Positions 5,601 through 43,424 are shown, numbered from the stretch's first letter. The stretch: DNA of 64,000 nucleotides from Macrostomum lignano (GCA_002269645.1 NIVC01000284.1:372001-436000), one strand, 5' to 3'. Numbers and translations are program-made. Notes: generated from the sequence alone by a model not told the origin.

Positions 5601-5674
5601 TGAATTGTGAGTACTTATAATTGATTTGACACATTGGGATGAAATTTAAGGCACCGAGATGGGATTCAAGACAT

Positions 5675-14315: not shown

Positions 14316-15932
<1,617 letters not shown>

Positions 15933-16393
15933 ACAGAGACTTGGTGTATATGCTTAGTATAGCGATAAACAGATGTATATAGGAACTAAGGAGTGAAAAA
16001 TTTCAGATTCAGTCATTGCTACTCATAGTAGAGTAATTGACAACCCAAAACATAAAAAAACAGTCAGCCGATCAACAAGATTTACTGCGGCCGGAGTGAT
16101 TGTTTTGCACATTCATTACGTCATCTTTGTACATCATTTCAGTGACTATGCTTTTGTCAATAGATGCTGTGTACATTGCACGCCCACTGAATCGGATACA
16201 GCTGCACATCTTTGATGTACACCTCTAACCTTTTTGAAAAAAACCGTGCGATTTCTATCAGTAAGAACCCGCACATACAAAGTGGTCTCAAATATCAAAA
16301 GCATCGAGCAGAAGTAAGTTTTAAATCTCTCCTAATCAAACCCAGCAGAGACAAAGTGAATCGTCACGTGCTAGTGTAGTAAATTTTCTCTGA

Positions 16394-21607: not shown

Positions 21608-22828
21608 TATCATAATACATGTAAGCCAGTTAACTGGGGAAACGTCCTTTAGCAATGAGCAGTAGCTTTAGAGGCGTGTCTAGTATGTATTCTATACCGG
21701 TATATTACATTCTATATTACCAGCTAAAATAGGTTCTGAGATCTTACTCGTTGGCAAGCTGGTCTAAACCACCAAGCCTTGGTCCGAACCTCACCTGTGG
21801 ACACACGTTCAAATAAGTTCTGTATAACTATGAATATAGTGCTAGAATGGTCTATTTTACATAGCAGCCGAACTACGTCGCTCTGTAGCAACAGTAGTCG
21901 GCGGTTTTGAGTCCTTAGTTACTGTAGACTTTGTCTTTGCCTTCACTTGTAGAAACCCGTTTAATGTGAAGCCGCTCCTCAACGCTGGTCTCTTGATCTC
22001 TTGGAATTTTAGGAATCGAAAATTCTTAAAAGTTGGTAGCTATGAAAGTACCCTCGCATTTTTACGAGTATCTCTCTAACGTGGCAACTATATTTTTATT
22101 TGATTTATATTATTTGATTAACGGTTTGCAAACAAACTAATGTTGAGCGCAGTTTGAGTTGGTGCTCTAGGTTTATTGATTTTTCAATTTAATAGAAAGG
22201 GGTTTAAAGCACAGGCTCTAGCGGGGAGTGGGGTGGTAAGAGTGCATAACCTGATGTGAACGATTTAAAAAATCAGGGCGAAAGGTAGCGTGAATCGACA
22301 GGGTAGATGCAGATACAACTCAAAACCAAACTAAAAACTACAACAAAATTATTGAGTAGTCCAATAACGACAATGAGTGGCACGGTAGTCGATCGTGAGT
22401 ATAAGTTTGTACAGACATGCAAACGATATCAACAACACCTTTACTCTTCCAATTAACTTTATCCTTTCAATTACTGGCAAATACGACTAATCACCCGAAG
22501 AGCCTTCAAGCGCATTTTAGAAAAAAAATCCAGTTTCTTTTAGTACTTGACTGATATACTAAACGCATGTTGTAATTAAAGGCTTTATAGTCCTCGTAAT
22601 AAAATTTTTGCTACAACCAAGTGAAAAACTTTACGTTGATCTCTCCAAGTTATTCTTGGTTATAACATTTGGTTAACCTTAACTAACGCTTTAAAAGCAG
22701 ACCCAATCTGTAACTGAACTGGTATTAACTACAGAAAATTATTGGGATTACGAAATTTAAAGAGAAGTTAGTTTTAGAATTAAACAGAAACTTCAGTGCA
22801 CTACAAAAATCTTCTAAACGACATCAGT

Positions 22829-25800
22829 TTAGTAATCTTTGAAACTCTCCATTTTTTGTAGACAGAACTTCACATGCTCGCGACTGTTGCTGTAGTGAGC
22901 CAGGGTGAGCAGCTCCTCCAAGTCCGGGTCATCTTGCAGCTGAGTCTTCCAAGCATCGAATGAGATTTTATTTTCGGGTGTTCGATCGCGGAGCAGCTCA
23001 GCTTGGAAACTCCAGCTCAGGCAGCGGAAGTTCACGTACAGGTGTGAGCACCGAGGCTGGGACAGTCTGGCAGTGAACAGAGACTGCGTGAACTCGGGAA
23101 GAAAAGGAAACCGAGGCGGAGTGTCGCACGGAAAGCAGAACCTCCACGCCCAGTCTGAGTCGTCGGGAACCTCCCAATGTTCCAGCCGACTGGTTGGAAA
23201 GCATTCCGGCGTCCAGGCAGGCTGAGCAGAGTGATTGTAGAGCCTCTTCAGTGGTGACTCGGCCTCCACAACCTCTCCGAACTTTAAGTGCGCCATGACA
23301 TTGAGGCAGAGTCCGGCAGTCTTGCACCACTGCAGTCGGTCAAGAAGTTGCAGGTCATTCATTAGGGAGACCTTATTCGTTTCTGCTGACGTCAGCTTCT
23401 GTAGGCACTGGTAAATTACACAGTAGGCATCCGCAAAGTGCAGGTATTGGTTTTTGCGTCTCGGTGTCACTTCGCTCACTCTACTTGGTGATGCCAACGG
23501 CAGTAGAGCAAAAGGGTGGAAGAAGAAGTTCTGTGACTGCAGTGGTCTTAGGTGCTCTTTCAGCACATTCACCATATCTCCAATGTTTCTTCGCACCTCG
23601 CTCAGTCGGAGTCGAACCCTCGATTTCGTGTTGTCGAATTCGCCGCCGATTCCAGCGTTCTTGAAGTACAGCGAAGCGTCCGACATGAAGAAGTGCGGCA
23701 TGCACTCGTCGGGCGAGCTGCTCGAGTCGATGAAGCTCAGCATCATTTCGAGAGCCTCTTTCACTAGAGAAATCAGATTTTCTGGCTGCCAAGCCAGATC
23801 GAAATCCTCGGTTCCATGCTTCTCGAGCATGAAGAAGAGCAGAGTCTTTGCGTGGTAAGTCTTGAGTCCAGGTGTTTTCAATGTGATGGGTAAGTATCTT
23901 TTGAAGATAAACTTGATTACTGTGAAGAGTTGGCCTTGAACGTCAGAGAGGCTTCGCATGATTCTCTTTTCGTGCAAGCTGAAGCTCACTCTGAGCTCGT
24001 TTCGGGTTTGCTTTGTAGGTCGGGTTGCTCTCACCAGATGAACTTTTGGCAGTTGATCAGTGATGAGTTTAATCTTCTGAGGATCTGTGCAAAAGTCGCT
24101 GCAGCACTGAAAGGCATGGCACAGGTCCAGTCTGGGTCTCACGCCGCTTGCCGGAGTTGCTACTGCAGGCTGGCTTCCTAAAATTAAATAATAATTTTTT
24201 GCTGTATTTATAAATTATATTCTTAATAATACCATTGTAGATGAGTTTTGACGCTCGTAGGCTATCGGAAAGACCTTTGATTTAGATATCTTCAGATATC
24301 TGTATGAGCCTAGATGTCTTAAAATGAAGTAGCTTTTGATAAAAGTAGCTCGTATGCCTAAAAGTTATAAAAGTCGTAAAATATTCTACGCACCACAGCA
24401 CTCGGGAATATTGGCATGACCGTTTGCCACCGTCCACTGATTAGCCTGTGCACACTCCCCCGCCTCGGAGCACCCGCCCTGGAGATGAAACTTCTGCAGA
24501 GCAACAACAACCGTCCAGTCGATGTCTGAGTCATCCGCCGTTCTGCCGTTCACTTGAACCAGACTGTTGGCCCAGCCCTCTGCGTAGCTGCCAGTCAGCC
24601 AACTGTCGTCACGGACCACTGCGATGGCGATTCTCTGCAGGCAGTCGGCCATCACCTTCTGGCACTCGGCTCTCTCGCGGGTGAATCCTGCCGAATTGAA
24701 CAGCTCGTGCAACTCCGTGCTCAGCTGCTCCTCCTGTGCGCGATTTTCGTTCCTAAAATGCGTAAATAGTTTAATATGTAATTGCAGGAAAAATCAGTTA
24801 TTAACTCGTGGATAGTTGGTCAATATCTTACCTTAAGAAAAAAGAATCAAGTAGTCGAAGAAGCTCTGAGTGTCCGTTCTGCTCCGCCCACTTCACGCAT
24901 ATCAAACCCCGATCGTCTTGGTGACTCGCATCCGCTCCTTTGTCTATCAGACTCTTTGCAGCTCGCACGTGACCCGCTTCGCATGCTCGAGTAAGAGCCG
25001 TCCGACCGTGACTGTCTTGGGCTTGCACGAATGCACCGAGCTCCACAAGCTTCTCGATGAGCTCGTGGTGACCTGCATCAGCTGCCAACATGAGAGCAGT
25101 GGCTCCTTCGCTGTCTGGCAGGTCAAAAACATCTCTGGTGAGCTGACGCAAAATAGCGAAGGCCAAGGATACATGCTCACTGTAAATCGATAGTAACAGA
25201 AGCCTCAACTTTTCGGCCGGCTCCATGGTTGACAATGTTTTGTCTAAAATAGAGTTTTCATTCTTCAGTGCCATCATAGAGAAAAATTGAAGCAACGGTG
25301 GAAACTCAAAGAGCCACTGTGGTTCAATATCAAAGCGTTCTACGACGGTTTCGTGTCCGAAAGACGCTCCGGCGAGAGCGCATTGGCGGTCGCACTCAGC
25401 TCTCCGTTCTGCATCGCGAACATTCCGCAACGAGGACATCATGGCATCAGCTTCGCCGCATTGTGCTGCAGACTCAGCAGCCCTGCTGTAGTAGAGATCC
25501 TTCAGACCTTCATCTTTCAGATCATCGACTTCTTTTGAGATAGCATCGAACACATCAGTTTTACCGCCACTTTGTGCGGACTCCGCTGCCTTCATGCAGC
25601 ACTCCAGCCTGACGGATGGCTCTTCAGCCGACTGAACCAGAAAATTCACCACCTCGGTATGGCCGTTGAAAGCCGCTGGCTCAACTGCAGTCAAGCGGCA
25701 CTTGTCTCGCACTTGCTTTTCTGAGACTGTCTCAATGACGAACTTCACAAAATCAAAGTAGCCGCTTTTGGCAGCCGGCTTAACTGCTACTGTGCAGCCC

Positions 25801-27248
25801 TGATCTTTTAAAGATGGAGGAAATTTCATCAGAAGTAAAGACTCCGCAACGTCGAGCTTGAGATTGTTGACGGCTGACTCCACTGATCGCAGATAGCCCT
25901 CATCTTTAATGCTGGAATCATTGATGCTGTTAACAAAGTCTTTCGTCTCTTCCAAGCTACCACTCCAAGCAGCAGATTCTGCAGCGGACGCGTAGCATTC
26001 GTCCTTTTGGCCCTGGTTCCTAATAGACGCAGCTAGAAACTTCACAACATCCCATTTTTGCGAATCCGAAGCGGATTTTGCAGCTTTCTTGCAGCACTGA
26101 TCTTTTACAGTTTCGTCGACCATTTCTTGAACCAGATAGGTCACCACCTCAAGATGACCGTTCTTTGCTGCAGGCGGAGTGGTCGTGTTGCAGCACTGGT
26201 CCTTCAAGTTGTCTGCAACAGAGTCTACCAGAAACTTTGTGATCCAAAGCTGACGATTCTCTCCGAATGCCTCAGCTACTTTAAGGCAGCACTTGTTTTT
26301 CAGTTTCTGGTCTTCGATGGCTTCGATAGCATGTTTTGCCACTTCAAAGTGACCGCAGCTGGATGCAACTTCAGCTACTTTTATTGGGCATTCATGCTTG
26401 AGTCTTATGTTTTTGCAGCCTTGCAACACGGACTTCACTAGCTCAAAGTGTCCATTTCTAGCAGCAGATTCGGCAGAAATCATGCACAGTGCACGTTTCT
26501 CGCTTTCATTTTCTAATTTATTGAGCAACGCTTCGACAAGTTGGGCGTAGCCTTTGGCACCGATATGCCTTGCTGCGACTGTCACTGAGAGTCGTTGATC
26601 TGCTTCGTGCTGTGCCAAGACATCACTGCACTGCTCTCTCACTTCTGGTTCAGTGGATTTTCTCGACAACAGTTCCAGTGTCTCCAACAATCCTTTTCCT
26701 GCAGCTTGTTTCTCTTGGTTGTTTGTTGCAGTTCCAGCTGCCTCTATGCGAAACTGTTGCTTCAACTCCTCGTCTGAGCTCAGTTCAACAAAAAAATTTC
26801 GGACATGTAAATCCTGGCTGTCTGCAGCAGCGTTAGCGAATCTGCGGCAGCATTGGTCTTTCAAGCTTTGGTTGCTGATGGCTTTTGTAAGAATTTGCAC
26901 GACATCCCAAGAGCGCCATATTTGGGCGGATTCTGCCATCTCACGGCACCAATTGTCCTTCCGCTCGCTGTCTCCCATGCTGTTTATGAATGATTCGAGT
27001 TTTTCCATCTGTTTGAACTTCATTGCGTGAATGGCAGCGGTTATGCAGCTCTGGTTCCTGGCATCTTCATCGCCAATACAGCTTATCAAGTACTCCACCA
27101 TTTCCCATTTCTGGTTTTGCAGAGCAAACAAAACTGAATCCTTGCATAACTGGTTTTTTGCATTCGAGTCATGCGTCTGCTCTACAAAAGCTTTTATTTT
27201 TTTTTGATCGCCACCCTTTACAACATCTATTAAACTGCTTTGACTCAT
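22829..27248 (-). CDS. Ankyrin-repeat cGAS-like receptor (Mab-21/cGLR nucleotidyltransferase), paralog A, 1374 aa, 3 exons
   Basis: Exons 27248-24832, 24752-24394 and 24177-22829 join in frame through GT-AG introns of 79 and 216 nt (phases 2 and 1), totalling 4125 nt. Exon 1 has degenerate 33-aa repeats and then canonical ankyrins (GATALMLAADAGHHELIEKLVELGA, GRTALTRACEAGH). Exon 2 has TGSYAEG...SDIDW (NTase GS plus DxD). Exon 3 has RLDLC (third acid), HLV, RVSFSLHEK, LKTYHAKTLLF and MPHFF, which are Mab-21 family motifs. Confidence 0.88.
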
Positions 27249-27462
27249 GATGGCGAGTAGATTTTGGCACGGTTGATTGGCGCCAAAAGCAAGCCGATAT
27301 AGTTAGTACTGAAATGTTCCTCGTTGTCTAGCACAGAATACGAGCGAAGTAGCTTGGCTAAAATTGAACAAAAAGAAAGTAAATTAAATGAATTGCATTA
27401 AGATCCAGCAATACTTTCGTTCTGGCAGGTTAACTAATGCAGAGTTTGAAACCTAATTCGAA

Positions 27463-27830
<368 letters not shown>

Positions 27831-28440
27831 AGCAGAAACGAAGTAGCTCGTAGTAGTCATGAAGCTCTCTAAACATTTTTGGTAACCAAGACGATGGTAA
27901 CATCTTTTATGGCAAATATACTCCTAGGTTATTCTTTAAATTTAACCAGATAGGTCACCGTTTAGGTTACATTTCTACCATAGTAATTTTAATCGAACCA
28001 ATAACTATACAGTGAGCGCCAATATGCAAGTAGTCGGAAACACCTCTGTAGTCGCACACAGCACGTAAAGGCCATTTCACATTGCTGTGTAGTGTGAGCA
28101 TCTTTTGCGTATTCTATTAGTTAGGTTTTGCATTATTGTTATTGAATTATTATTTTGCTTTAGTTTAGTCATACGTTTTTGGTGTACTTTTTCCTTGTTA
28201 AGTTAGAATCAATTTTGCGTAAACAGGCTAGACGTCAGACGCTATTTGTGACTCAGCGGAGGGTTGAGTTTTTGTCTGCGAACCCTAGCTTTGCGCGGCC
28301 AGCCAATCAGAACCGGCCTGGACCCTGGCACGCGGCAAGTTTCAATTCTACCCGGCGCCGCGGGCACAGTGCAATTCGGCTTAAGCAAGCGGCCGGCCAG
28401 ACGACCACCACCCGGCTTGAGGGGGTTTTGAGGGGTTGTG

Positions 28441-28820
28441 ACCATAGATAAAGTATACATAGATTCCACCCCTACCCCCGCGGAGTGTCTAAATTGTGAC
28501 CATCACTTTATTCACTGCGCTCCTATTGGCTGGGCCACGCTATGCACATTGAGTCCACGTGTGTACATTCCCCCAACTCCGCTTTTCTATTATCTCCGCT
28601 TTAACTGTTGAAACTGGTAAGACATCCTTTCGTTCCGCGCATTAAAGTTATAAAGCTTTCTTGTGTGGAAGGGGTGAGGGAATGAAATCGAAGGTGTTGA
28701 AAGGAAGGCTTTCGCGCCAGCCAATGAGAGCACGGTGAGTTTTATGGTGGTCAAAGTTTGGACACGAGCGTGTGTACATTCTGGGCAGGGGTGGAATCTA
28801 TGGTATACTTTATCTATGGT
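28441..28820. mobile_element. ~380-bp element bounded by a ~34-bp inverted repeat (MITE-like)
   Basis: ACCATAGATAAAGTATA-CATAGATTCCACCCCT (28441-28473) is the reverse complement of 28787-28820 with a 1-nt indel. Confidence 0.5.
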
Positions 28821-30944
28821 TGTGACTTTGACTATAAATGAAAGTGTGTTTGGCAATCAGATCTCGCCTTCTCTCCTCGCTTCTCTCCTCTCTTCCCCGG
28901 TTTTGTCTTGTCTCCCGGCCGGTGGCCTAGCTGTTTCCCTTTGGTTCGCGCTTTGAGGCGCCTGAATTCATCACCCCCGGTCCATATCTTTGTTTCCGCC
29001 CAACCGCTTAGTCTTGTGGCGTAACGTCTACGGCAAATTTCTGTCTGAAGTCGTCGCTGTCAAGCGCGGTTAGATAGAGACTGTCGGATCTGATCAAGTA
29101 CGCGGCCTCGATCCCGAGGGCCTCAGTGTTACACTGAAGGGCAGTGCCGATAGAATTTAGTCGGTACTCCGTTGAACGGTCGATTCGGCAGGGCTCTCGT
29201 TTGAGTGTAGGTTCTGGCTTAGGCCAGGGGTTAGGAGTCTTTCTCCGTGGTCGTGTGTTCGGTGCCTCCTTCTCCTTCTTCTTCTTCAAGCTGAGATCCG
29301 CTTGTCAGTGCGTAATATAATCATTATTATTAATCGTTATTATTCGTTATCATCAGTCTAATTATCTGCGCCGCGAAATTGCTTGAATCCTGTAACTTGA
29401 ATAATCAAATTAAATCGTCTAGCCAATTATCAGTTGTATCACGTAGGATTATCACTCTCTAAATCTTTCGGTTTGTGTTCCCTCGTGTTCTTTATTTTCT
29501 TGTACTGTACCTGCGGCTATTGGAGAAAGACTGGTAGGACTCGCCGACCGGCGATAGGCGATTAGGATCAATAGCTTTAAAATCTCTGACGCTCCAAGTA
29601 GGTTTGTCTAGGGCCTAAATAATTGCTCACCGTGCATGCTATTTATCTAATTGCCTATTTATCACAGCTGCCATCAGCTCTGCGGGTCCAAGATTGCTCA
29701 AATCAGTTTTGAAATGTGTCTGAACCAACTGCACATTGATTTGAGCAATATTGGACCCGCTAATATCGGTAATGTGGAACCTGACTTGACGAAAAACTTA
29801 AAGTAGGGCAGCGATTGAGTAAAAGTACACGAAATCAGCCTTGTCCTGGTTCTGGTATTTTTTATTTTGATAAAAGCTTAACTGGAAACAGTTTAATGCA
29901 AAACTTACCGAAGCTAAAGCTAAATGTCCAGTAGAGTTTCTAAGCTGTAGGTCTAGCAAATATTCAATGATAATAATCAAAGTCACTTGATTTCAAAAAC
30001 AGCGAAGGCAGCACTGAGTGTGCAGCTTATTGCGAACATATGCGGGTAGCTTCGTCTAATGGGGAGGCTTGTCTGCCCTGAGCTTTTATCCTTGGCTTTA
30101 CCGTACAAGGTGAGAACAATAGCAAGTCGGATTGCTCATGCACTACAGGTGCCAGCGTTAAGCCACTGGAATCTGCTTGGTTGGGGTTCGGTGCATCGTA
30201 GGTAGCATCTTCTAAATTTTGAGCAGAGCTTCTTATTGAAACCTGTGCGTACCTCGTACAATATTAGGTTTCAGAGCCGCGGTCAAAACTCTAATTAAGG
30301 CCCGAAAACATATTTAAACTCCTTAAGCGGAGGGGTTGGTGGATTGAAGCACAATGCAACGGAATAACAAGATGGCGCGTGTAGGCAGCCACGGGCCTTA
30401 AAACACGCCCCCCTTGCGTGCTCGCAAGCTTCGGTAGAAACTGAAATAGCCTCCTCTGTCTCATTTTTCTATAAGAAAGGCTGCCTTGACACTGCACTGC
30501 ACTGCACTACACTGCACTGCACTGGCAGAAGCTGAGATCTTAAAGAAAGTTTCCTTACTTTTTCAAACGTAGAATTGGTAGAATTTCCGACGAAGTCAAT
30601 ATATAAAAGGCAACCAAAAGGTAAGAAGTTTAGACAATTGGGAAGCATGCAATCGTTGCGTGTGTTTGTTCATGCTAAAGAGTTCGCTTTAGCACACTAG
30701 AGAGAGAGGGAAAGAGAGAGAGAAAGAGAGAGAGAGAGAATTAAGTCTAGTTTCTAAATGCACGAACTCCCACTTCCTGACCTAAGGCCTGGGAACGAAA
30801 TTCAGTTATCACTGCCTGGTGCGGGCTCCTCTTCTTTGTTGGGCAGGTTCGTAGAGCTCGTTTCTTCAAATCTTCCTCCTCCGGAGTAGTCTTCTTGAGT
30901 TTTAAAATCGGCCAATTATGAGAGCATTTCAATTTAATCCGTCG

Positions 30945-31270
30945 ACGTCAATACATTCCTCGAGTGCGGAAATCAATATATTCCTCGAGTGCGGAAATCA
31001 ATACATTCCTCGAGTGCGGAAATCAATACATTCCTCGAGTGCGGAAATCAATACATTCCTCGAGTGCGGAAATCAATACATTCCTCGAGTGCGGAAATCA
31101 ATACATTCCTCGAGTGCGGAAATCAATACATTCCTCGAGTGCGGAAATCAATACATTCCTCGAGTGCGGAAATCAATACATTCCTCGAGTGCGGAACTCA
31201 ATATATTCCTCGAGTGCAGAACTCAATATATTCCTCGAGTGCAGAACTCAATATATTCCTCGAGTGCAGA
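30945..31270. repeat. 25-bp minisatellite (AAATCAATACATTCCTCGAGTGCGG)n, about 13 units
   Basis: Direct reading. Confidence 0.95.
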
Positions 31271-32146
31271 GATGCGCCCTGATAACAAAGTCAACTCTAT
31301 AACAATGACGAGGTCCTCCAGAAGGGGCGTCTTCTTCTAGAAATAACGGAATCGGGGTCGTGCGCTCCTATCGGGTACTTTAGGGTAATAAAATCAATCA
31401 ATCAATAATCGACTAAGAGTATCGGAATCGGTCCGCAGATCCTATCCAATCCCTCAGGAATAGGGAGGCCTCAAATTCAATAACTCGATAAAATCGACTG
31501 ATCAGTAACGGCCGGCAATAACACAGCTCTCAATAATTGAATAACAAAGACTCTGACAAAGGCCTACGAATTGGTATTTGTCTCCCTCAGAGATTTAGCC
31601 TTACTTGGCTGCTCTGGCTAAGCCCAAGATTTTTTAAGGCTGCTCCGAGCCTGAGGTTTCAGCTCGGATTTTTCGCTTTTTCGATTTATACACAATTTTA
31701 TTCGACTTTGAGCCCCAAACCGGTTTTATTGATAAAAATCAAGAAAAAGACTGTGTCCTTTGACCGGTGGGGTTTTGAATAGAAAAGGTTGAAACTTGGG
31801 TCGCATTTAAGTTAAAATTTACCATATTTGGAAACATAGGTTGAGAACCGGTTTTTCGAACTATGGAATGATCACTCGCTGTTTTTGTGATATTACAGGT
31901 ATTAATGAAAATAGAGTATGCCGCATGCTACTTTTAAATTTGCATTGTAATTTTATCTTACTACTTCTAGTAGGCTACCTTGTTTGGAGATCTCTACAAT
32001 AATGTGTTAATATACCCAATTATGATCCTCAATGCTGATCAGAATTGACATAATTTACAAGAATAATGAACAGTTGCGTGCGATCGTACTAGACGTGATG
32101 AGTCAATCCTATTTGAAACTTTTAACTACTTTATTATTGGTTTTGT

Positions 32147-32400
32147 CAGCCTAACTGAGAATAAAGCCATCCAATGTGAGAATCCTGCCTACGCTGACTG
32201 CGAAGGGCCTGGCTGCGTGCAGCCTTAGTCTATGGGCCATAGACAATAAAGGACAAGCAAAGTTTTAAAAGACCAATCGATTCTCACATTGGATGGCTTT
32301 TTATCACTTTGCTTGTCCTTTATTGTCTATGGCCCATAGACTAAGGCAGTCAGCGTAGGCAGGATTCTCATTTTGGGTGGCTTTATTCTCAGCTAGGCTG
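32147..32400. mobile_element. ~250-bp foldback palindrome (MITE/hairpin element)
   Basis: The left arm CAGCCTAACTGAGAATAAAGCC...CCTTAGTCTATGGGCCATAGACAATAAAGGACAAGCAAAGT pairs with the right arm ACTTTGCTTGTCCTTTATTGTCTATGGCCCATAGACTAAGG...GGCTTTATTCTCAGCTAGGCTG. Confidence 0.7.
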
Positions 32401-32896
32401 AAAAAAGCAATACTTAATTAGTTTCAATGCTACATTTACCTTCAAGTGCACAAGAGTTACAAGTTTTTGTCTATGTTAGCTACACCGAACGTTCAACCTT
32501 GACAGCAACCCATTAGCGAAAACGTGCCCCCTAGGGTTGTCACAGCTTTAAAGACGCCTTCTGCAAGGGAGAAATACGCTCGTAAATGTTAGATTATGCG
32601 AATTATCTCGAACGCACTTGTCGCCCCTAATTTAATCTAGAACACAAGGATTACACACTATAAATAGTTAATGTTGGGAGAGCCAGCTTATTTATAAACA
32701 TAATTCTTGAATAACATTCCGTACTGCATATATTTACCACTGACCTTTAACCTTCAGAACCTTTGCGAGTTAATCGACACAAAAATTATATTCGAATCGC
32801 TGGAGATTTGAAAGAGTAGCTTCGCAACTTCGAATACCTTCGCAACTACGCAAGGCCTCAAAATCTTTAAAATACTTCTGAAAATCTGAGCAAAAA

Positions 32897-35749
32897 ATGA
32901 GCAGCGATGAAGATGACGATACAAGATTGCTAGAATCATTCACGCAGCAACTAGAACGCATTGAAGACAGCAGTTTGAAAAATGAATTCTGTTTTGCGGC
33001 TATAAAATATCCGGCGATCCAAGGTCGCACAAAACTCGTTCAGTTAGTAGTAAACAAAATGGCTGGCCAGGATGCCCGGGATCAGTGCTGCTTACTGGCA
33101 GCAGAATTCGCTGCAGAAGCTTGTCAATGGGATGTGGTTGCAGTTCTAATAGACGAAGTAAATATACTAATTGCGTTGGCAATTAGAAATATGGTGATCT
33201 CAAAAATTTGGAACCAAAGTATGAAATATCAGTGCTGCAAGGAAGCTGCGGAATCTGCTGCAAGGATCGGGCAGTGGAAAATTGTAACCTTTCTCTTGGA
33301 CACAGTCGCTGGCCAAAGTTTGGGACCTCAGTGCTCAAAGGAAGCTAAATCTGCTGCATCGAGTGGTCATTTAGAAGTGGTGAAGTTTCTTGTGGGGACA
33401 GTCGCTGACCAAAGTGAGAGAGATCAGTGCTGCAAGGAAGCTGCGGAATCTGCTGCAATTTGTGATCATTTAGAAGTGGTGAAGTTTCTTGTGGAGACAG
33501 TCGCTGACCAAAGTGAGAGAGATCAGTGCTGCAAGGAAGCTGCAAAATATGCTGCATCGAGTGGTCATTTCGAAGTGGTGAAGTTTCTTGTGGAGACAGT
33601 CGCTGACCAAAGTGAGAGAGATCAGTGCTGCAAGGAAGCTGCGGAATCTGCTGCATCGAGTGATCATTTAGAAGTGGTGAAGTTTCTTGTGGAGACAGTC
33701 GCTGACCAAAGTGAGAGATCTCAGTGCTGCAAGGAAGCTGCGAAATCTGCTGCAAGGAATTGTCATTTAGAAGTGGTGAAGTTTCTTGTGGAGACAGTCG
33801 CTGACCAAAGTGAGAGAGATCAGTGCTGCAAGGAAGCTGCGAAATCTGCTGCATCGAGTGATCATTTAGAAGTGGTGAAGTTTCTTGTGGAGACAGTCGC
33901 TGACCAAAGTGAGAGAGATCAGTGCTGCAAGGAAGCTGCGGGATCTGCTGCATCGAGTGATCATTTAGAAGTGGTGAAGTTTCTTGTGGAGACAGTCGCT
34001 GACCAAAGTGAGAGATCTCAGTGCTGCAAGGAAGCTGCGAAATCTGCTGCAAGGAATTGTCATTTAGAAGTGGTGAAGTTTCTTGTGGAGACAGTCGCTG
34101 ACCAAAGTGAGAGAGATCAGTGCTGCAAGGAAGCTGCGGAATCTGCTGCAATTTGTGATCATTTAGAAGTGGTGAAGTTTCTTGTGGAGACAGTCGCTGA
34201 CCAAAGTGAGAGAGATCAGTGCTGCAAGGAAGCTGCAAAATATGCTGCATCGAGTGGTCATTTCGAAGTGGTGAAGTTTCTTGTGGAGACAGTCGCTGAC
34301 CAAAGTGAGAGAGATCAGTGCTGCAAGGAAGCTGCGGAATCTGCTGCATCGAGTGATCATTTAGAAGTGGTGAAGTTTCTTGTGGAGACAGTCGCTGACC
34401 AAAGTGAGAGAGATCAGTGCTGCAAGGAAGCTGCGGGATCTGCTGCATCGAGTGATCATTTAGAAGTGGTGAAGTTTCTTGTGGAGACAGTCGCTGACCA
34501 AAGTGAGAGATCTCAGTGCTGCAAGGAAGCTGCGAAATCTGCTGCAAGGAATTGTCATTTAGAAGTGGTGAAGTTTCTTGTGGAGACAGTCGCTGACCAA
34601 AGTGAGAGAGATCAGTGCTGCAAGGAAGCTGCGGAATCTGCTGCAATTTGTGATCATTTAGAAGTGGTGAAGTTTCTTGTGGAGACAGTCGCTGACCAAA
34701 GTGAGAGAGATCAGTGCTGCAAGGAAGCTGCAAAATATGCTGCATCGAGTGGTCATTTCGAAGTGGTGAAGTTTCTTGTGGAGACAGTCGCTGACCAAAG
34801 TGAGAGAGATCAGTGCTGCAAGGAAGCTGCGGAATCTGCTGCATCGAGTGATCATTTAGAAGTGGTGAAGTTTCTTGTGGAGACAGTCGCTGACCAAAGT
34901 GAGAGATCTCAGTGCTGCAAGGAAGCTGCGAAATCTGCTGCAAGGAATTGTCATTTAGAAGTGGTGAAGTTTCTTGTGGAGACAGTCGCTGACCAAAGTG
35001 AGAGAGATCAGTGCTGCAAGGAAGCTGCGGAATCTGCTGCATCGAGTGATCATTTAGAAGTGGTGAAGTTTCTTGTGGAGACAGTCGCTGACCAAAGTGA
35101 GAGATCTCAGTGCTGCAAGGAAGCTGCGAAATCTGCTGCAAGGAATTGTCATTTAGAAGTGGTGAAGTTTCTTGTGGAGACAGTCGCTGACCAAAGTGAG
35201 AGAGATCAGTGCTGCAAGGAAGCTGCGGAATCTGCTGCAATTTGTGATCATTTAGAAGTGGTGAAGTTTCTTGTGGAGACAGTCGCTGACCAAAGTGAGA
35301 GAGATCAGTGCTGCAAGGAAGCTGCAAAATATGCTGCATCGAGTGGTCATTTCGAAGTGGTGAAGTTTCTTGTGGAGACAGTCGCTGACCAAAGTGAGAG
35401 AGATCAGTGCTGCAAGGAAGCTGCGGAATCTGCTGCATCGAGTGATCATTTAGAAGTGGTGAAGTTTCTTGTGGAGACAGTCGCTGACCAAAGTGAGAGA
35501 TCTCAGTGCTGCAAGGAAGCTGCGAAATCTGCTGCAAGGAATTGTCATTTAGAAGTGGTGAAGTTTCTTGTGGAGACAGTCGCTGACCAAAGTGAGAGAG
35601 ATCAGTGCTGCAAGGAAGCTGCGAAATATGCTGCACAAAAAGGTCATTTAGAAGTGGTGAAGTTTCTTGTGGAGACAATCGCTGACCAAAGTGTGAGTAA
35701 ACAGTGCTACAGAGACGCGGAAGTCTTGCAGTGCCTACTGAAGACATAA
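32897..35749 (+). CDS. Ankyrin-like repeat protein, 950 aa, with 22 near-identical 33-aa (99-bp) repeats plus a terminal repeat
   Basis: Single ORF with a unique N-cap and C-cap. The unit DQCCKEAAxxAAxxxHLEVVKFLVETVADQSER matches the ankyrin core AAxxGHLEVVKxL. The array runs exactly 33422-35599 (22 x 99 nt). It is homologous to the repeat region of gene A. Confidence 0.82.
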   Translation: MSSDEDDDTRLLESFTQQLERIEDSSLKNEFCFAAIKYPAIQGRTKLVQLVVNKMAGQDARDQCCLLAAEFAAEACQWDVVAVLIDEVNILIALAIRNMVISKIWNQSMKYQCCKEAAESAARIGQWKIVTFLLDTVAGQSLGPQCSKEAKSAASSGHLEVVKFLVGTVADQSERDQCCKEAAESAAICDHLEVVKFLVETVADQSERDQCCKEAAKYAASSGHFEVVKFLVETVADQSERDQCCKEAAESAASSDHLEVVKFLVETVADQSERSQCCKEAAKSAARNCHLEVVKFLVETVADQSERDQCCKEAAKSAASSDHLEVVKFLVETVADQSERDQCCKEAAGSAASSDHLEVVKFLVETVADQSERSQCCKEAAKSAARNCHLEVVKFLVETVADQSERDQCCKEAAESAAICDHLEVVKFLVETVADQSERDQCCKEAAKYAASSGHFEVVKFLVETVADQSERDQCCKEAAESAASSDHLEVVKFLVETVADQSERDQCCKEAAGSAASSDHLEVVKFLVETVADQSERSQCCKEAAKSAARNCHLEVVKFLVETVADQSERDQCCKEAAESAAICDHLEVVKFLVETVADQSERDQCCKEAAKYAASSGHFEVVKFLVETVADQSERDQCCKEAAESAASSDHLEVVKFLVETVADQSERSQCCKEAAKSAARNCHLEVVKFLVETVADQSERDQCCKEAAESAASSDHLEVVKFLVETVADQSERSQCCKEAAKSAARNCHLEVVKFLVETVADQSERDQCCKEAAESAAICDHLEVVKFLVETVADQSERDQCCKEAAKYAASSGHFEVVKFLVETVADQSERDQCCKEAAESAASSDHLEVVKFLVETVADQSERSQCCKEAAKSAARNCHLEVVKFLVETVADQSERDQCCKEAAKYAAQKGHLEVVKFLVETIADQSVSKQCYRDAEVLQCLLKT

Positions 35750-36599
35750 TCTAGCCATTTGTGAGGCAGCTGTCAACGGACTTTAGACGTTTTTTTACTC
35801 TGAGTAACTAATCGTAGTTTCAATTATTTTCTTGAAGAGACCAGCTTAATGCTATAATTGCTTGCCTCGAGTTTCAAGCCATTAGAAGCAGAGCTTTAGC
35901 AGAATTGTAGGAGTATATCTGAAAGAAACAGTAAAATGGTTGATTTTTTAATTACAAAAGAGCTATGCTTAGCACGACAGGAATTTAGAAGCTTATTTCA
36001 GTAGCTACTGGTTTGCCTTTAAGAAAGAATCTCTGCGATTTAACTTAAGTTTAATTGAATTTATAACATACTTAACCGATTGCCCTGCTTTTGTTATTTT
36101 GTTTCTATCCACATTTGAATATTTTACTCTAGCTGCGTGAACTATATTGACTTGATGCACTATTTTGTCTGTCTGTCTGGCTGTTGTAAAATGTTGAATG
36201 TCCGAAAATCTGTCTGATAATGCTTATTCAACTTAAGTTTTTTAAATGAAAGATGTAGCAAGCTATGCTCGTATTTCTTGTTAAAATTCATAACTGTCAC
36301 GGCTTACATGTAAGCGTATGTGTACGCTTACATATTACATGCTTACATGTCGTATGTTTGTCTGTACTGAAAAGTAGTATGATTTTTTTACTTTTTACTA
36401 TTGATACTATTAATTAATTTTTTCGCCTTTCGCACAAAAGCTATTGTATAGTTATCGATTCTTAAAATGGAATACTACAATAATTAAGTTTGCTATCTGT
36501 AAAAGTATAATTACTTTAATTTTGACGGAATGTTATAATTTGAATAAAAATTTATTGTTTGTTTTGCCTAGATGTCGGCTGATGGAGAAATTACTGAGA

Positions 36600-36835
36600 T
36601 GTCAAGGATTAGAGGGGAATTGCTAAAATCTCAAGGCTTACAGGGGAATTGCTGAAATGTCAAGGCTTACGGGGGAATTGCTGAGATGTCAAGGCTTACA
36701 GGGGAATTGCTGAAATGTCAAGGATTACAGGGGAATTGCTGAAATGTCAAGGCTTACGGGAGAATTGCTGAGATGTCCAGGCTTACAGGGGAATTGCTGA
36801 GATGTCCAGGCTTACAGGGGAATTGCTGAGATGTC
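36600..36835. repeat. 29-bp minisatellite (GGGGAATTGCTGAAATGTCAAGGCTTACA)n
   Basis: About 8 tandem units. Confidence 0.9.
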
Positions 36836-36884
36836 AAAGCAGAGAGGTAAGAAGCCACATGTAGTTTATTCAAAAAATGTACCT

Positions 36885-37415
<531 letters not shown>

Positions 37416-37880
37416 TATTCATCTATTCGAGCGTATAAGCTTTAATATTAAAGATCGAATAAGTTTTTCCATGAAAGCAAAAGTAGTGGGTAGTATCCTT
37501 ATACAGTGCATAAAAATTTGCGTCCAGTTGAAAACGCCTGGCAGAGCTGCAAGTACATGTAGTGATATGATGGTACTGCAATGCAAAATCTTAGCTGTTG
37601 TAGTGGTAATTTTCATTAGTGCAGAAAAAAGCATCAATTTCAGTCCGCTCCTGACTGAAAGAGAACGGTGTCCTTTCAGTCCATTGACTGAGACAGTCTT
37701 GTCCAATTAGGTTACCAAAAGTGACTTGTTGTTGATGCTGCGATCATGATCTACACCATGAGCACAGGTGCAAGCTTTGTCGACTTCCTGCTGGCTGATG
37801 CAATTGGGTGCAATGCATTTTGTTTTTCATTTTCTTGTGTCTGTCACTGCATAAGCTAATAAATATGAATTTCATAAAGG

Positions 37881-38240
37881 GGGGCCGTAGCCCAGCGGTC
37901 TAGCGCAGGCTCTGGTGTGCCAGCGACCCAGGCTCGATTCCAAGTGCAGTCACATTAATTTGGGGCTGAATTGGAATCTCGGCTTGGCTCTGCTCGTGCA
38001 ATTAACGGCCTTGAGAGCCAACCCCCCCCCCAAGGCGCAGTGAAGTGTACATGCCTAACGATAAAATAAAGTTAGGGCCGCTGTACACTCCTGTGTGAGT
38101 GTGTGCCTGCGTACGTATCCGCGCGCTTGTATGCCTGCTCAGGGGAGTCGGCGGAATGGGCAGTAATGCCTCTCGCCGGTTGTGTGCCTATGTCGCCTTA
38201 AGTGCGCCAGGGTGCACACAACCCCCCTGGCTCTAAAAAA
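37881..38240 (+). mobile_element. tRNA-derived SINE
   Basis: The head GGGGCCGTAGCCCAGCGGTCTAGCGC...GGCTCGATTCC has Pol III A- and B-box-like motifs but no complete cloverleaf. The 3' end is uncertain. Confidence 0.55.
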
Positions 38241-38464
38241 ATGAATTTCATAAATTTGAGTGCGGTCTGAATAAGCAGAAATATATGTTTAATTCCATAA
38301 TTAATTCAAAGTACTCGAGTATAAAATTCTATGCACAAATACGAAACATATTTGTTTCAAAATCCGTTCCAAGTAAATCTGAGGAGCAACTTTCTTCTTT
38401 CAGTCGACGTCTCCAGGAGCTAAATGTTGAAGTTTAACATTTTTATCAACTGAAATGAGCACAA

Positions 38465-38545
38465 GTAGAGGCTGAGCAGCTCAGTATAAACGCATCTGAC
38501 TCGCGCCATGACCCCTGGTTCGATTCTTTGTGCTCCAGTTGTCGT
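38465..38545 (+). mobile_element. Degenerate tRNA-like SINE head
   Basis: B-box-like CCTGGTTCGATTC preceded by a weak A-box-like GAGCAGCTCAG. Confidence 0.35.
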
Positions 38546-39694
38546 GCGATTCACACTCACTAGTGCCAGCCCCAAAGCACAGAGAGTGTGACATGTCTGA
38601 AGATTAGAAAGTCAGGGCTGCTATCAGCGTTCAAATGCTGTTATGCCACCCCTGACTGACTGTGTAGGTCACGCGATAAAAGTGCGGCACAGCCACTGCC
38701 ACTCCCCGCAGCTCGTGATAAAACGGAGGAGTACAATGGAGGAGAGAGCTAAGACCTCTCATTCTTTCTTCCTGGAAAGCACAATACACTCGCGCATCGG
38801 TCCGAGGGAGATCACCGACCCTTACACTTGACCCGAGCTCGACAGTAGGCATGTGGCTGTAGCCCAATGCATTAACAGTAGGAATACCAAGCCATTTTTC
38901 GCCCGTCGAACTACCAAGAGGATGTCACCTGGTGTCATCTGTTGAAGGTGCCGACGGTGTCGGGGGATGACAGAATGCTTGAGATATTAGCTTAGGATGT
39001 CCAGCAGTTGAGACTTGCCCACTGTCGAGGCTTGATCAGCAAAACTACAGAAATTTCCATCAGGGTGTCCATAGTCACCTGGTGCCACCTGTTGAAGGTC
39101 CAGAAGCTCCGTCTGGGTGAAAACCAGTGACCAACGAAGACAGACCTGATGCAGTAACATGTGATAGAAGTGCTGATGAAATTTGGTGACTTAGCAAGGC
39201 TGCACTGAGGTGCAGTGCTGATTGGCTCACAGGGGTGTACTGGTTACACTAGCGCTTATGGGAAAATCCGACCTTCTGGCAGAATCGTCGAATATCTCGA
39301 CGGTCCGGAGGGCTGGAAAATTTATTCTTGTTTGAGAAGGTGCGCAACAAAAAGTTAGCATGTGTTTTTTAATTTTGTGTACCTGCATTGCTCCAATACG
39401 GCCCAGCAAAAATTGTCGGGGGGGGGAGGAATTCCCCCCTTTTAGTAGTTCCACTGTTAAAATAGGTATTTTAACCTATACCTATATCGAAGAGACAGGA
39501 AGCAGTGGATAAAATAACAAAAATATCCGCGCTATAGCCGCTGTACACCCTGTATGAGCAAGTGCATGAGTGCTGTGCCTGCGTACAGTATTGACGCTTG
39601 TTGTGGGATGATGTGGGACGATATAGAAAGAAATTGATGTTTCTCTTTAGTTTTAAGTCGAACTGTCCAATCTTCCTACTACATGTATAAGCAG

Positions 39695-42600
39695 TGTCTC
39701 TAGAACCTGTAACTGATCTGGTCAACAGAATCAAAGACGAACGACGCAAAGATCTGTGCTGCAAGAATGCTGTAAAGGCTGCGTCAGATAACCAAAAATG
39801 GTCTGTAGTTAAATTTCTGGCAGAATCTGTCAGCTCAGATGACGGTAAAGATGACTGCTACGAAACCGCTGCAGAACGAGCCGCATGGAGCGGAGAGGCA
39901 GAAGAAACGAAATTCTTTGTGTCAAAAATCGCTGATCCGCACCGGAAGGGTCAGAGCTATCTTAAGTCAATTGAGTCAGCGGCCAGTAAGCTGAAATTTA
40001 ATGTCGTCGAATCATTAAGTTCAGATGAAGTCAGTTACTCAGGTCCTGCGAAATGAAGGCTGTGAAAGAGCGATGAAGCACGCGTCCAAAGACAAGTACC
40101 TTGATTTTGTTGAATTTCTCATTACAACCGTGTCTGACGATCGAGTTCGAGACAAGTGCTGCTTGACTGCCGTGGAGCACGCTGCATTCAACGGTCACTC
40201 CAGAGTGGTGGACTACTTAAGGCGATCAATAAGTCCGTCTGCCGAGCAAGAATTCCTCCTGAAAGCGGTGATAGGTTCAGGAAGCGGCGGCCACCCTGAA
40301 GTGTTTCATATCGTATCCAGAGATTTTAATTACGACTTAGCAAAAATGGCCGCGGAATCAGCAGCCCAGTCCGGAAAAAAGGATAGCATGCTACATTTTT
40401 TGGACCAAATTAAAAATAAAAATGGCGACGTTGAAGAATGCAACCACATATGTGCAAGGGCAGGAGCTTCCTTTCATCACGAACACATCGTAAACTACTT
40501 CGATATTCAGCCCCAATGGCTTAAGGAAGACAAAGACTTCGTGGATTTCTTTTCGAAGTTGGCGAGGGAAGGAAAGAATTCAATTCTTAAAAAACTTTTG
40601 CCTCGTATGAGTAAAGCTGAAACTCATCATCTTTTAACGGAATCAATTTCAAAAGGCTACGTCGCACTTGCCTTAGCGCTAGTGCCTTTTGTCTGCAAAC
40701 AGCAAGTCGATCTGTCTGACAAAGATGGATCCACTGCTCTCATGCTGGCAGCTGATGCAGGTCACCACGAACTCATCGAGAAACTGATAAAGCACGATGC
40801 TTCAGTAAATGCTCAAGATAGTCTCGGTCGAACCGCTTTGACTCGAGCGTGCAACGCAGGTCACGTGCGTGTGGCCAAGTCTTTAATAGACTCTGGGGCG
40901 AATGCAAGCCATCGAGACAATCAGGGTCTGACTTGCGCGCAGCTTGCAGAGAATCGAGGACACACCGAGGTGCTGCGATTGCTGGAATCGACCAGCCTCA
41001 GGTAATTTCAATATTACATTTAAATAGAAGTTTATTTATTAGAGAACAAACTGCATTAATGACTCTAAGCTACTGTTAATTTCCAAAATAATTGTCGATT
41101 GAGTCAAAATATTCTTTTCAGAAGCAACGACTGCAACAAAAAAAGCCTAAAACTACACGATTTGCTGAAAAAGTCCGGATTCACGAGTTCCAGAGCTCAG
41201 AGCGTGCAGGCAATGGCCGACTGCCTTCAAAGAGTTGCAATTTCTATTGTTCAAGGCGAAATAGAAATTACGGGTAGCTTCGCAGAGGGATGGGCTAATA
41301 GCCTAATGCAAGTAAATGGCAGAACAGCAGCTGAGTCAGACATCGACTGGACTGTGTTCATTGCTGGACTGATAATGCATTTGAATAACCACTGCCATTG
41401 TCCACCCGGCACCAAGTTACGTGTGACAAACGGACACGCCCAAGTGAATGAAGGGTCCGGTAAGTTAAGAATATTTAGTGTAAAACCGTACATGACACGC
41501 TAGTTAGTCAGACTAAAGTAATATAAAATGTTGGCCCCTCCGAGAGAAAAGAGTGGTTTGTGTGGTAGGTTCGTTGAAATAAAGCATAATTATGAGGAGG
41601 CCATTTTATTCAAATAATATAGATATTACAGGTGCTTCTTTGAAACTGATCCCAGAAAAAATCCTGACAAATTTTAAATACGAGCTAAAAATCCTTTGAC
41701 CGCTAAAAAGTTACCGTAAAGAGAATATCACTTCCGACGTTTTTAAGCCCGCATTCCTACTCATGCAGTCCAGAATTTTTTACTCAACTATTATCCACCA
41801 TATAGGAAGCCAGCCAGCAGTCACGACACCAGCAGGCGGTGTTCGACCAACACAGGACCTGTGCTATGCCATAAAGTGCTGCAGTAGCTATTGTACAGAA
41901 AACAGAAAATTGCTCAAAAAATTGGTTATACGCCCCAACGCTGACGATCCAGGACTACATGTTCATCTCGTCAGTGCTACCCGACCTACAAGGCAAACTC
42001 GAAACGAGCTCAGGGTGAGCTTCAGCTTACACGAAAAGAGGATCATGAGAAGCCTCTCTGATGTCCAGGGTCAACTCTTCACAGTAATCAAGTTTATCTT
42101 CAAAAGATACTTACCCATCACACTGAAAACACCTGGACTCAAGACTTACCACACAAAGACTCTGCTCTTCTTCATGCTCGAGAAGCACGGAACCGAGGAT
42201 TTTAATCTGGCTTGGCAACCGGAAAATCTGATTTCTCTTGTGAAAGAAGCTCTTGAAATGATGCTGAGCTTCATCGACTCGAGCAGCTCGCCCGATGAGT
42301 GCATGCCGCACTTCTTCATGTCAGACGCTCCGCTCTACTTCAAGAACGCTGGAATCGGCGGCGACTTCGACAACACGAAGTCGAGGGTTCGACTCCGACT
42401 GAGTGAGTTGAGATTCGGCATCGAAGGAGTAATTGAGCAATTCATGGAACAGCTGAGACCACTGCAGTCACAGAACTTCTTTTTCCATCCGTTCACCATT
42501 CTACCACTCACGCATCCAGCTAGAGTGAAAGAAGTCACGTCAAAGTACACTGATCAGTACCTACACCTTGCGGATGCTTACTGCGTAGTGCATCACTGCT

Positions 42601-43424
42601 TGCAGCAGCTCCAGTCAGATCACACTAATCAAGATGACCTCGCGACTCAACTCAGTCTGTTGGACCAGCTGAATTGGTTTAAATGTGCCTTTTTGTGTCT
42701 CACTGCCATGGCTCACCTCAAGTTTGGTGAGGCTAAGAAGGCTGAGGTAACACTAACTGGACTTCAGAGTCACTCCATACAGACTGCTTGGGACCCAGAG
42801 CTGTTATCAAATCGAAGATTCAAGAACCGGAGTACGTGGGAAGTACCTCTCGAATTAGACTGGGCGTGGAGGTTCTGCTTTCCGTGCGACTCTCCGCCTC
42901 GTTTTCCTTTTCTTCCCGAGTTCACGCAGTCTCTGCTCACTGCCAGACTGTCGCAGCCTCGGTGCTCACACCTGTACGCGAACTTCCGCTGCCTGAGCTG
43001 GAGTCTCCAAGCTGAGCTGCTCCGCGATCGAACACCCGAAAATGAGATCTCATTCGATGCTTGGAAGACTCAGCTGCAAGAGGACCCGGACTTGGAGGAG
43101 CTGCTCACCCTGGCTCACTACAGCAACAGTCGCGAGCATGTGGAGTTCTGCTTGAGACAGATGGAGATTGTAAAAGACGAGGGGCGCGTTGCCATGGAGA
43201 GGGTTGATAAAGATAAGCTTCAATTGGTCAAGAAAATATGGATGAGTGAGCTTTCCGACTTTGGTGCCGTGATAGAAGCCACTGATTTGCTACTCATTCA
43301 GTCAGGAATTGTGTCACGGGTCAAGAAAATTGGCAGTATTCTCAGAATACTAGCATTGCACTTCTTGATAGTTGTCGTGTTGATTGTTATTGTCATTTTC
43401 GTATCCTATCTTCCCGCTGTTTGA
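39695..43424 (+). CDS. Ankyrin-repeat cGAS-like receptor (Mab-21/cGLR), paralog B, with C-terminal transmembrane helix; 5'-incomplete with one frameshift
   Basis: Segments are about 39695-41001 (frameshift near 40015-40020), 41122-41459 and 41806-43424. The GT-AG introns have the same positions and phases as in gene A. Motifs are TGSFAEG...SDIDW, QDLC, RVSFSLHEK, LKTYHTKTLLF and MPHFF. The protein ends ILALHFLIVVVLIVIVIFVSYLPAV*. Confidence 0.8.

Follow-up and report, generated by a model that had tools for sequence, protein, structure and literature searches.

Head-to-Head Ankyrin-Repeat cGAS-Like Receptor Genes in the Flatworm Macrostomum lignano: Conserved Active-Site Residues and an Apparently Disrupted Ankyrin Arm

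Introduction

What might a cGAS-like receptor (cGLR) do when a long arm of ankyrin (ANK) repeats is fused to its enzymatic core, in a phylum presumed to be without the pathway? The question is raised by two genes in a 64,000-nucleotide stretch of the genome of the flatworm Macrostomum lignano (GCA_002269645.1 NIVC01000284.1:372001-436000; this whole stretch is called the window below, and positions are counted from its first letter). Gene A (27248-22829, minus strand) and gene B (40025-43424, plus strand) lie head-to-head, with transcription pointing away from each other. They are paralogues from a Macrostomum-specific expansion of ANK-cGLRs, and would act as regulated nucleotidyltransferases (NTases) that carry an ANK recognition or regulatory module.

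ANK-fused cGLRs constitute a recognised yet functionally blank branch of a major innate immune receptor family, and M. lignano is a transgenic flatworm that is tractable to RNA interference. Knowledge of what the M. lignano ANK-cGLRs sense and produce would test if protein-recognition modules can be coupled to cGLRs, and the same enzymes would test if canonical STING is dispensable for cGLR signalling. The original prediction for this locus, made from its sequence, supposed that fusions of ANK and Mab-21 domains might already exist in databases without functional characterisation. This is borne out by the census of Li et al. 2023 (PMC9980059), in which 87% of cGLRs stand alone and some are fused to TPR or ankyrin domains, making ANK-cGLR a recognised architecture, and in which “most platyhelminthes” are described as lacking cGLRs. 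Its Table S2 includes M. lignano cGLRs with an N-terminal Ank_2 domain, and the M. lignano proteins catalogued there are PAA68676.1, PAA86972.1, PAA45980.1, PAA67649.1, and PAA58690.1. They match A and B in species, family, and architecture (N-terminal Ank_2, cGLR core, and C-terminal extension). Likewise, Table S3 contains five M. lignano paralogues (samples 89-93) that entered a 140-enzyme screen as core constructs without the ANK arm. Samples 92 and 93 plainly belong to the ANK-cGLR family, and sample 92 (PAA93208.1) is, over the stretch printed there, nearly identical to protein P0009, which shares 59% identity with the gene A core.

Any novelty of the class is thereby lost, since ANK-cGLRs, M. 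lignano members included, already figure in that census and screen; A and B are further members of a catalogued class and of a species-specific expansion. They are not named in the text of that study or among the supplementary rows listed, and M. lignano is missing from Table S5, which counts cGLRs and STING proteins. Within the library searched, functional work on ANK-cGLRs or Macrostomum cGLRs was limited to Li et al. 2023. The interest of the locus lies in what ANK-cGLRs might do in a phylum presumed to be without the pathway, to which A and B add modestly: one full-length member that seems to be unannotated (gene A), and a case of an ANK arm that has been amplified, broken, and exchanged.

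Gene Structure

The prediction that three open reading frame pieces on each strand splice in frame, at identical intron positions and phases, was confirmed by the in-frame joins, by GT-AG intron borders, and by the GenBank proteins P0001 and P0002. In gene A, exon 1 (24832..27248, minus strand, an open reading frame of 806 codons) encodes an N-terminal ANK-like solenoid and three canonical ankyrin repeats; exon 2 (24394..24752) encodes the N-lobe of the NTase core; and exon 3 (22829..24177, stop included) encodes the third catalytic Asp (24125-24127), the Mab-21 C-lobe with the motifs ELRVSFS (23978-23998) and TYHAKT (23843-23860), and, at the C-terminus, a domain of ~240 amino acids (aa) that is specific to the family. 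When joined, these exons yield 4125 nucleotides (nt), or 1374 codons with zero internal stops. Gene B follows the same plan on the plus strand. Its first exon, taken from the first ATG (40025..41001), encodes a short ANK part of 326 aa, composed of ANK-like and canonical ANK repeats; exon 2 (41122..41459) encodes the NTase N-lobe; and exon 3 (41806..43424) encodes the third Asp, the Mab-21 C-lobe, the C-terminal domain, a predicted helical extension, and a hydrophobic tail. The joined product is 2934 nt in length, or 977 codons, again with zero internal stops.

All four introns have GT...AG borders, with lengths of 79 and 216 nt in gene A and 120 and 346 nt in gene B, and they lie at matching alignment positions. 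Intron 1 is in phase 2 in both genes and follows the aligned residues “...LR”, exon 1, at 2417 nt for A and 977 nt for B, leaving a remainder of 2 in either case when divided by 3, and intron 2 is in phase 1 in both, between G and SQPAV. The GenBank protein P0001 (BOX15_Mlig015951g2, partial), whose model starts at 40106 in exon 1 of gene B, is contained 100%, letter for letter, in the spliced gene B product and has the same junctions. P0001 is encoded on contig NIVC01000284.1, where the annotated genes are spaced exactly as in the window. P0002, a copy at 96% identity to gene A, has the same junction peptides. Among the matches in the protein collection, none was identical to spliced gene A, the best being a 96% copy covering 62% of the query, and gene A may lack a correct model in public annotation.

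The proteins encoded by A and B share 70% identity in the core, and the ratio of nonsynonymous to synonymous substitution rates (dN/dS) between the genes is 0.27 for the whole comparison and drops to 0.14 for the NTase exon, so that the arrangement of A and B is not due to chance. Both reading frames are under purifying selection.

Membership in the Mab-21/cGLR Superfamily

A and B almost certainly belong to the Mab-21/cGLR superfamily. The claim that they are proteins with ANK repeats, an NTase, and a Mab-21 domain is upheld by the agreement between Pfam (ANK and PF20266), profile alignment, and a fold model. For example, Mab-21_C (PF20266) was matched at 28.4 bits by A and at 24.9-26.2 bits by B, relative to a gathering cutoff of 24.1. 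A 12-member family profile searched against all PDB sequences retrieved cGAS and cGLR1 only (E 0.003-0.035), through the C-lobe; a single-sequence phmmer search of PDB with the gene A core returned nothing, and cGAS was reached only by the family profile. The strongest alignment was made with hhalign between the flatworm family and 17 distant proteins (99.8% probability, E 2.2e-29), which covered 281 columns in both lobes, from core residue 3 to 308, with GS, SDxD, and the third Asp in register. Seven of these 17 proteins were scanned with Pfam, and all seven matched PF20266; PF03281, the Mab-21 NTase domain, was above its cutoff in three and below it in three more.

When the family was aligned by hhalign with human cGAS alone, only the C-lobe was covered, at 18% probability; the register of the N-lobe came from the distant Mab-21 proteins. 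In the alignment with human cGAS, the zinc-thumb motif H(X5)CC(X6)C of vertebrate-type cGAS, which sits between the WRLSFS and YHVKT helices, is absent from the flatworm profile, which has a 12-residue gap exactly there, and the motifs WRLSFS..EK and YHxKT align. These two motifs, together with SPAV...D, are common to the Macrostomum family and the characterised cGLRs, among them human cGAS, Drosophila cGLR1, Cv-cGLR1 of C. virginica, and Sp-cGLR1 and Sp-cGLR2 of S. pistillata, which have the Mab-21 bilobal fold and the GS/DxD/D active site in common with it. In contrast, structural alignments between the two groups reach only 11-14% identity, and the Macrostomum family is set apart by a 10-aa insertion between GS and DxD, by the missing zinc thumb, by its long ANK arm, and by a C-terminal domain of its own that has no structural match.

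For the 562-aa core of gene A, AlphaFold2 gave a model with a mean predicted local distance difference test score (pLDDT) of 74.5 and a predicted template modelling score of 0.78. It matched cGAS, cGLR, and MAB21L1 structures: a Foldseek search of PDB placed MAB21L1 (5eom) at the top, with an E of 5e-6, and also returned MB21D2 (7lt1), many cGAS entries, oyster Cv-cGLR1 (8gjw), and MiD51 (4nxw), all at a probability of 1.00 and at target-normalised template modelling scores of 0.45-0.53. The root-mean-square deviations of these matches are high, at 7-10 Å, which indicates that lobe orientation and loops are poorly modelled.

The Active Site

The statement that both genes keep intact catalytic residues is right at the sequence level, since the GS, SDxD, and Asp that had been picked out align with the active-site residues of Mab-21 proteins. 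On the minus strand, gene A encodes TGSYAEGW at 24572-24595 (GS at 24587-24592), SDIDW at 24515-24529 (DID at 24518-24526), and RLDLC at 24119-24133. Gene B, on the plus strand, encodes TGSFAEGW at 41270-41293 (GS at 41273-41278), SDIDW at 41336-41350 (DID at 41339-41347), and the third Asp, that of QDLC, at 41856-41858. In the profile-profile register, flatworm G48-S49 corresponds to the invariant GS (G62 S63) of the distant Mab-21 proteins, and S69-D70-I71-D72 to their SDxD (D76 D78); the Asp of R-x-D-x-C, downstream of S-Q-P-A-V, corresponds to their invariant Asp (D170), downstream of H-G-P-A. The counterparts in human cGAS would be G212/S213, E225/D227, and D319. Local likeness to the human enzyme can also be seen in TGSYYE versus TGSYAE, and in GSPAVTL...SVDITLAL versus GSQPAVAT...RLDLCHAF, of which only the C-lobe comparison was confirmed by an alignment tool.

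Among 12 aligned paralogues, whose identity falls as low as 31%, GS and SDID are invariant (12/12) and the third Asp is retained in 11, the exception being the most distant one.

A Macrostomum-Specific Family

When the last 568 aa of gene A served as the query of a word-index search, 31 proteins were found, of which 30 are M. lignano proteins with ANK and Mab-21_C domains, the other being a JGI sequence. The family profile, searched against 1.84 billion representative proteins, retrieved 612 relatives, 89 of them below 1e-30, and every strong match that was looked up proved to be an M. lignano protein with ANK and Mab-21_C domains. A and B sit in a Macrostomum-specific expansion of ~90 clusters. 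The nearest relatives outside Macrostomum are P0131-P0166 (profile E 1e-10 to 1e-13; hhalign 99.8%), which are cGLRs of the mollusc/cnidarian type. Like the Macrostomum family, they have a long region after the Mab-21 core, sometimes with TPR; unlike it, they have GS-x12-DxD spacing and no ANK arm, and their C-terminal regions cannot be aligned with the Macrostomum one. Ten proteins of this distant tier were scanned with Pfam, P0126, P0144, and P0169 included. All ten matched PF20266, eight matched PF03281 at E <0.01 (five of them above cutoff), and two gave weak, sub-threshold TPR matches.

Two paralogues are modelled with additional domains. P0038 (BOX15_Mlig026614g1, 2111 aa) reads as ANK, cGLR core, ANK, and a caspase domain (Peptidase_C14, 2.8e-27), and P0033 (2381 aa) carries a WSC domain together with a RING finger. 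Either model may reflect a genuine fusion or the merging of separate genes in annotation.

Ankyrin Arms and C-Terminal Regions

Exon 1 of gene A encodes at least 12 degenerate, 33-aa ANK-like units of a “DQCC type” (~aa 96-636), followed by the three canonical repeats (~aa 706-803), and a hidden Markov model of the 33-aa unit marks 14 stretches in the gene. Pfam Ank_2 was matched by gene A at 4.8e-31 (best stretch 706-778), by gene B at 1.2e-21, and by a separate, 950-aa ANK reading frame upstream of gene B at 4.9e-116. Neither NACHT nor NB-ARC is among the Pfam matches of A, B, or the 950-aa frame. The suggestion that these proteins are organised like an NLR therefore does not extend to a NACHT/NB-ARC module, and the likeness stops at a repeat arm plus an effector domain. 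A further piece of DQCC-type repeat occurs at 59007-59453 on the plus strand, as a 149-aa frame (Ank_4 4.3e-09; tblastn matches to gene A); no cGLR core was seen adjoining it.

At the other end of both proteins, the Mab-21 core is followed by a conserved domain of ~240 aa with the motifs FxFHPF, DWAWRFC, FLPEF, and YVNFRCLSWS. It has no Pfam match and does not align in hhalign with the C-terminal regions of distant cGLRs, and a Foldseek search of PDB with its AlphaFold2 model (pLDDT 71) yielded nothing significant, only short TPR/PPR-like helical hairpins (best E 2.6). The gene A protein ends directly after this domain, in ...KDY, with no frame open past the stop; an extra exon beyond that point was considered and rejected, because no frame continues the family's ERRVAMETQDEEK tail. 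Gene B continues past the domain with a putative helical or coiled-coil extension, judged by eye, and then a hydrophobic, tail-anchor-like C-terminal tail of 25 aa (ILALHFLIVVVLIVIVIFVSYLPAV; 43347-43421, plus strand), which gene A lacks. Similar hydrophobic C-terminal segments are found in the paralogue P0018. From their C-termini, the gene A protein is predicted to be soluble and the gene B protein to be membrane-anchored.

An Apparently Broken Ankyrin Module Upstream of Gene B

The ANK module of gene B appears broken into three parts: an ANK-only frame of 950 aa, a gap of 3.9 kb, and a frameshifted remnant; hence the short ANK arm of gene B as annotated. The remnant (39694..40056, plus strand) is ANK-like and out of frame. 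Because it lies in another phase yet is colinear with gene A residues 366-471, a one-base frame change relative to the gene B frame can be placed between ~40020 and 40045. A 13-nt “intron” that would bypass this frameshift was rejected as too short for splicing. The 950-aa frame (32897..35749, on the same strand as gene B) has a gene-A-like N-terminus and then 25 tandem units of 99 bp, 91% alike, the unit being homologous to gene A 26070-26173. Its last repeat breaks off at position 17 of the unit, and the remnant, 3.9 kb away, picks up at position 16. Judged by sequence, the pair resemble two halves of what was once a single exon, and the 950-aa frame probably represents the 5' half of an ancestral gene B that has become detached.

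A somewhat unlikely alternative is that the separation is only apparent, and that gene B and the 950-aa frame still form one gene of ~2000 aa, the frameshift being an assembly error and the 3.9-kb gap an intron. The homology of the N-terminus and repeat unit to exon 1 of gene A is consistent with this, as are the nearly contiguous break points within one repeat and the existence of two paralogues, P0032 and P0020, in which such arrays are fused to a cGLR in a single protein. There is even a candidate splice, from AAAG/GT at 35642/35643 to cag/ at 39694/39695, that would preserve the frame together with the 33-aa register of the repeats. Against this, the candidate donor is weak and the spliced product would still be truncated by the frameshift, whose site is not a homopolymer, and GenBank annotates the 950-aa frame as a separate gene, with a stop codon of its own. 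Neither transposon ends, in the form of terminal inverted repeats, nor a target-site duplication were found at the gap, and transposon insertion as its source was rejected.

Whether detached or not, the 950-aa array varies in a restricted manner. In its 24 near-identical units, the internal ones differ from each other in amino acid sequence at only seven of 33 positions (2, 10, 11, 14, 15, 16, and 18) and show synonymous variation at one site only. The two most variable positions are the counterparts of canonical ANK positions 13/14, where helix 1 ends. The array is built from about five repeat types, amplified in higher-order blocks, with no unit-by-unit diversity. Among fungal NLR-like (STAND) proteins, ANK, TPR, and WD repeat arrays with high internal conservation are known, and designed ankyrin-repeat binders are randomised at canonical ANK positions 13/14. 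The 950-aa frame resembles both in its near-identical 33-aa units that vary at few positions; in contrast with fungal STAND proteins, the Macrostomum family has no NACHT/NB-ARC module, and the array is not demonstrably joined to a cGLR. The variability thus lends indirect support to an ANK recognition role, through an array that is not demonstrably attached to the enzyme.

Proposed Function

By analogy with characterised cGLRs, A and B would be regulated NTases that make a nucleotide second messenger. The ANK array may be a recognition or regulatory module that binds a protein or some other non-nucleic-acid ligand, or one that holds the enzyme off. On the strength of the conserved residues, catalytic activity in both proteins is judged rather likely; that the ANK array is the sensing module is put forward more tentatively, as somewhat less likely than not.

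Several observations weigh against this interpretation. Pfam detected the ankyrin and PF20266 parts of the predicted architecture, the latter above its cutoff; PF03281, which had been expected alongside them, was unmatched in A and B, even by the isolated cores at values up to E 10, the N-lobe having diverged too far from that model. The spacing between GS and DxD is 20 residues in the family versus 11 in human cGAS, an insertion of ~10 aa, and AlphaFold2 pLDDT falls below 50 at gene A core residues 57-69 and 112-131, which correspond to the GS-DxD loop and to the surroundings of the third Asp. In the enzyme screen, the 15 actives taken further are from insects, anemones, molluscs, hydras, and corals, and no M. 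lignano protein was reported as active (PMC9980059). Finally, other flatworms examined to date, parasitic and planarian, have been reported to lack both cGAS and STING, as in Schistosoma (PMC4117786) and Schmidtea (PMC13563047).

If A and B are enzymes, they could be ordinary nucleic-acid sensors, the core binding double-stranded RNA (dsRNA) or DNA (dsDNA), like that of cGAS, Drosophila cGLR1, and the oyster and coral cGLRs, and the ANK arm only localising or scaffolding the protein. The cGLRs to which ligands have been assigned so far all sense dsDNA or dsRNA (PMC9980059), and an isoelectric point (pI) above 8.5, the range given for nucleic-acid sensors by Li et al. (PMC9980059), is found for the cores of gene B (8.9) and P0012 (9.3). 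The core of gene A is acidic (pI 6.4), however, and core pI scatters from 6.1 to 9.3 across the family, so that a uniform nucleic-acid-binding surface is not evident. The zinc-thumb insertion of cGAS is missing as well, and M. lignano core constructs supplied with a pool of nucleic-acid pathogen-associated molecular patterns are not among the actives reported in PMC9980059. Nucleic-acid sensing by A and B is thus regarded as unlikely.

Alternatively, A and B could be non-catalytic Mab-21 scaffolds or adaptors, as in MiD49/MiD51 or MAB21L1, which would bind a nucleotide or a partner and produce no messenger. MAB21L1 is the top structural match and MiD51, which is not known to be catalytic, matches too. 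The putative membrane anchor of gene B and P0018 also recalls MiD51, although at the opposite end of the protein: MiD51 is anchored by an N-terminal helix and gene B by a putative C-terminal one. In P0038, the second and third acidic residues of the core are lost (NDIN and QQTT), and relatives are without reported activity (PMC9980059). What argues against scaffolding is the conservation of GS, SDID, and the third Asp among paralogues that are only 31-60% identical, which is hard to explain without catalysis. Moreover, Mab21L1/2/3 have no predicted functional active site (PMC9980059), whereas the Macrostomum family keeps the full triad. A purely non-catalytic role is accordingly considered improbable.

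If regulated catalysis is accepted, it is tempting to go further and to imagine the Macrostomum ANK-cGLRs as a repeat-based recognition system, although the complete scheme is decidedly a long shot. Rapidly recombining ANK arrays of near-identical 33-aa units, variable at a few surface positions of helix 1, would provide binding diversity for proteins or other non-nucleic-acid ligands, and binding would activate the cGAS-like enzyme; its messenger would signal via something other than canonical STING, in a phylum from which cGAS and STING are otherwise reported missing; and C-terminal variants (soluble, tail-anchored, and possibly caspase-fused) would route the signal. Word-index searches for STING, with the human cyclic-dinucleotide-binding domain and with Ptychodera STING, found deuterostome proteins only, at a sensitivity too low to exclude a divergent flatworm STING.

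Relation Between the Two Genes

Over most of their length, the synonymous divergence (dS) between A and B is saturated, at 1.7-2.8. The exceptions are two inverted tracts, both in exon 3: one of 468 nt (23591..24058, with its partner at 41946-42413), at 91% nucleotide identity and a dS of 0.32, and one of 341 nt (22836..23176, with its partner at 42837-43177), at 92% nucleotide identity and a dS of 0.17. Since dS is saturated except in these two tracts, the paralogues A and B are old and have undergone gene conversion with each other, and a mosaic of low-dS tracts in a saturated background is what is expected for gene conversion between inverted paralogues.

The idea that A and B are paired sensor/helper receptors under a common bidirectional control region, like head-to-head plant NLR pairs, is favoured by their orientation and by their differing C-termini (A predicted to be soluble, B tail-anchored) but is very improbable. 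Their annotated starts are 12.8 kb apart, with another reading frame and long microsatellites in between. The two have the same domain set, neither one carrying an additional integrated domain; the catalytic residues are retained in both, and stretches of their sequence are homogenised by gene conversion. For three other paralogues the upstream flanks were inspected, and the genes lying there within 10 kb are unrelated ones, so that head-to-head pairing is no rule in the family.

The Surrounding Window

The region between A and B contains four simple repeats, namely (AGT)x118 at 27463-27819, a 25-mer repeated 12.8 times at 30948-31267, a 29-mer repeated 8.6 times at 36589-36837, and (CTAT)x136 at 36883-37426, which give rise to spurious long reading frames on both strands. 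Blocks of strongly skewed composition occur at 2001-6000 (GC skew 0.39-0.46), 14001-16000 (AT skew 0.71), and 20001-22000 (GC skew -0.55). The reading frames scanned in these blocks had no Pfam matches, and the blocks are probably satellite or low-complexity sequence with overlapping reading frames on one strand. Approximately 3 kb downstream of gene B, a fragment of a piggyBac-type transposase (DDE_Tnp_1_7, 8.2e-12) lies on the minus strand at 46448-47089. Finally, past the 149-aa ANK-like frame, GC-rich reading frames are found on both strands at 59.9-63.9 kb, two of which match DUF6944.

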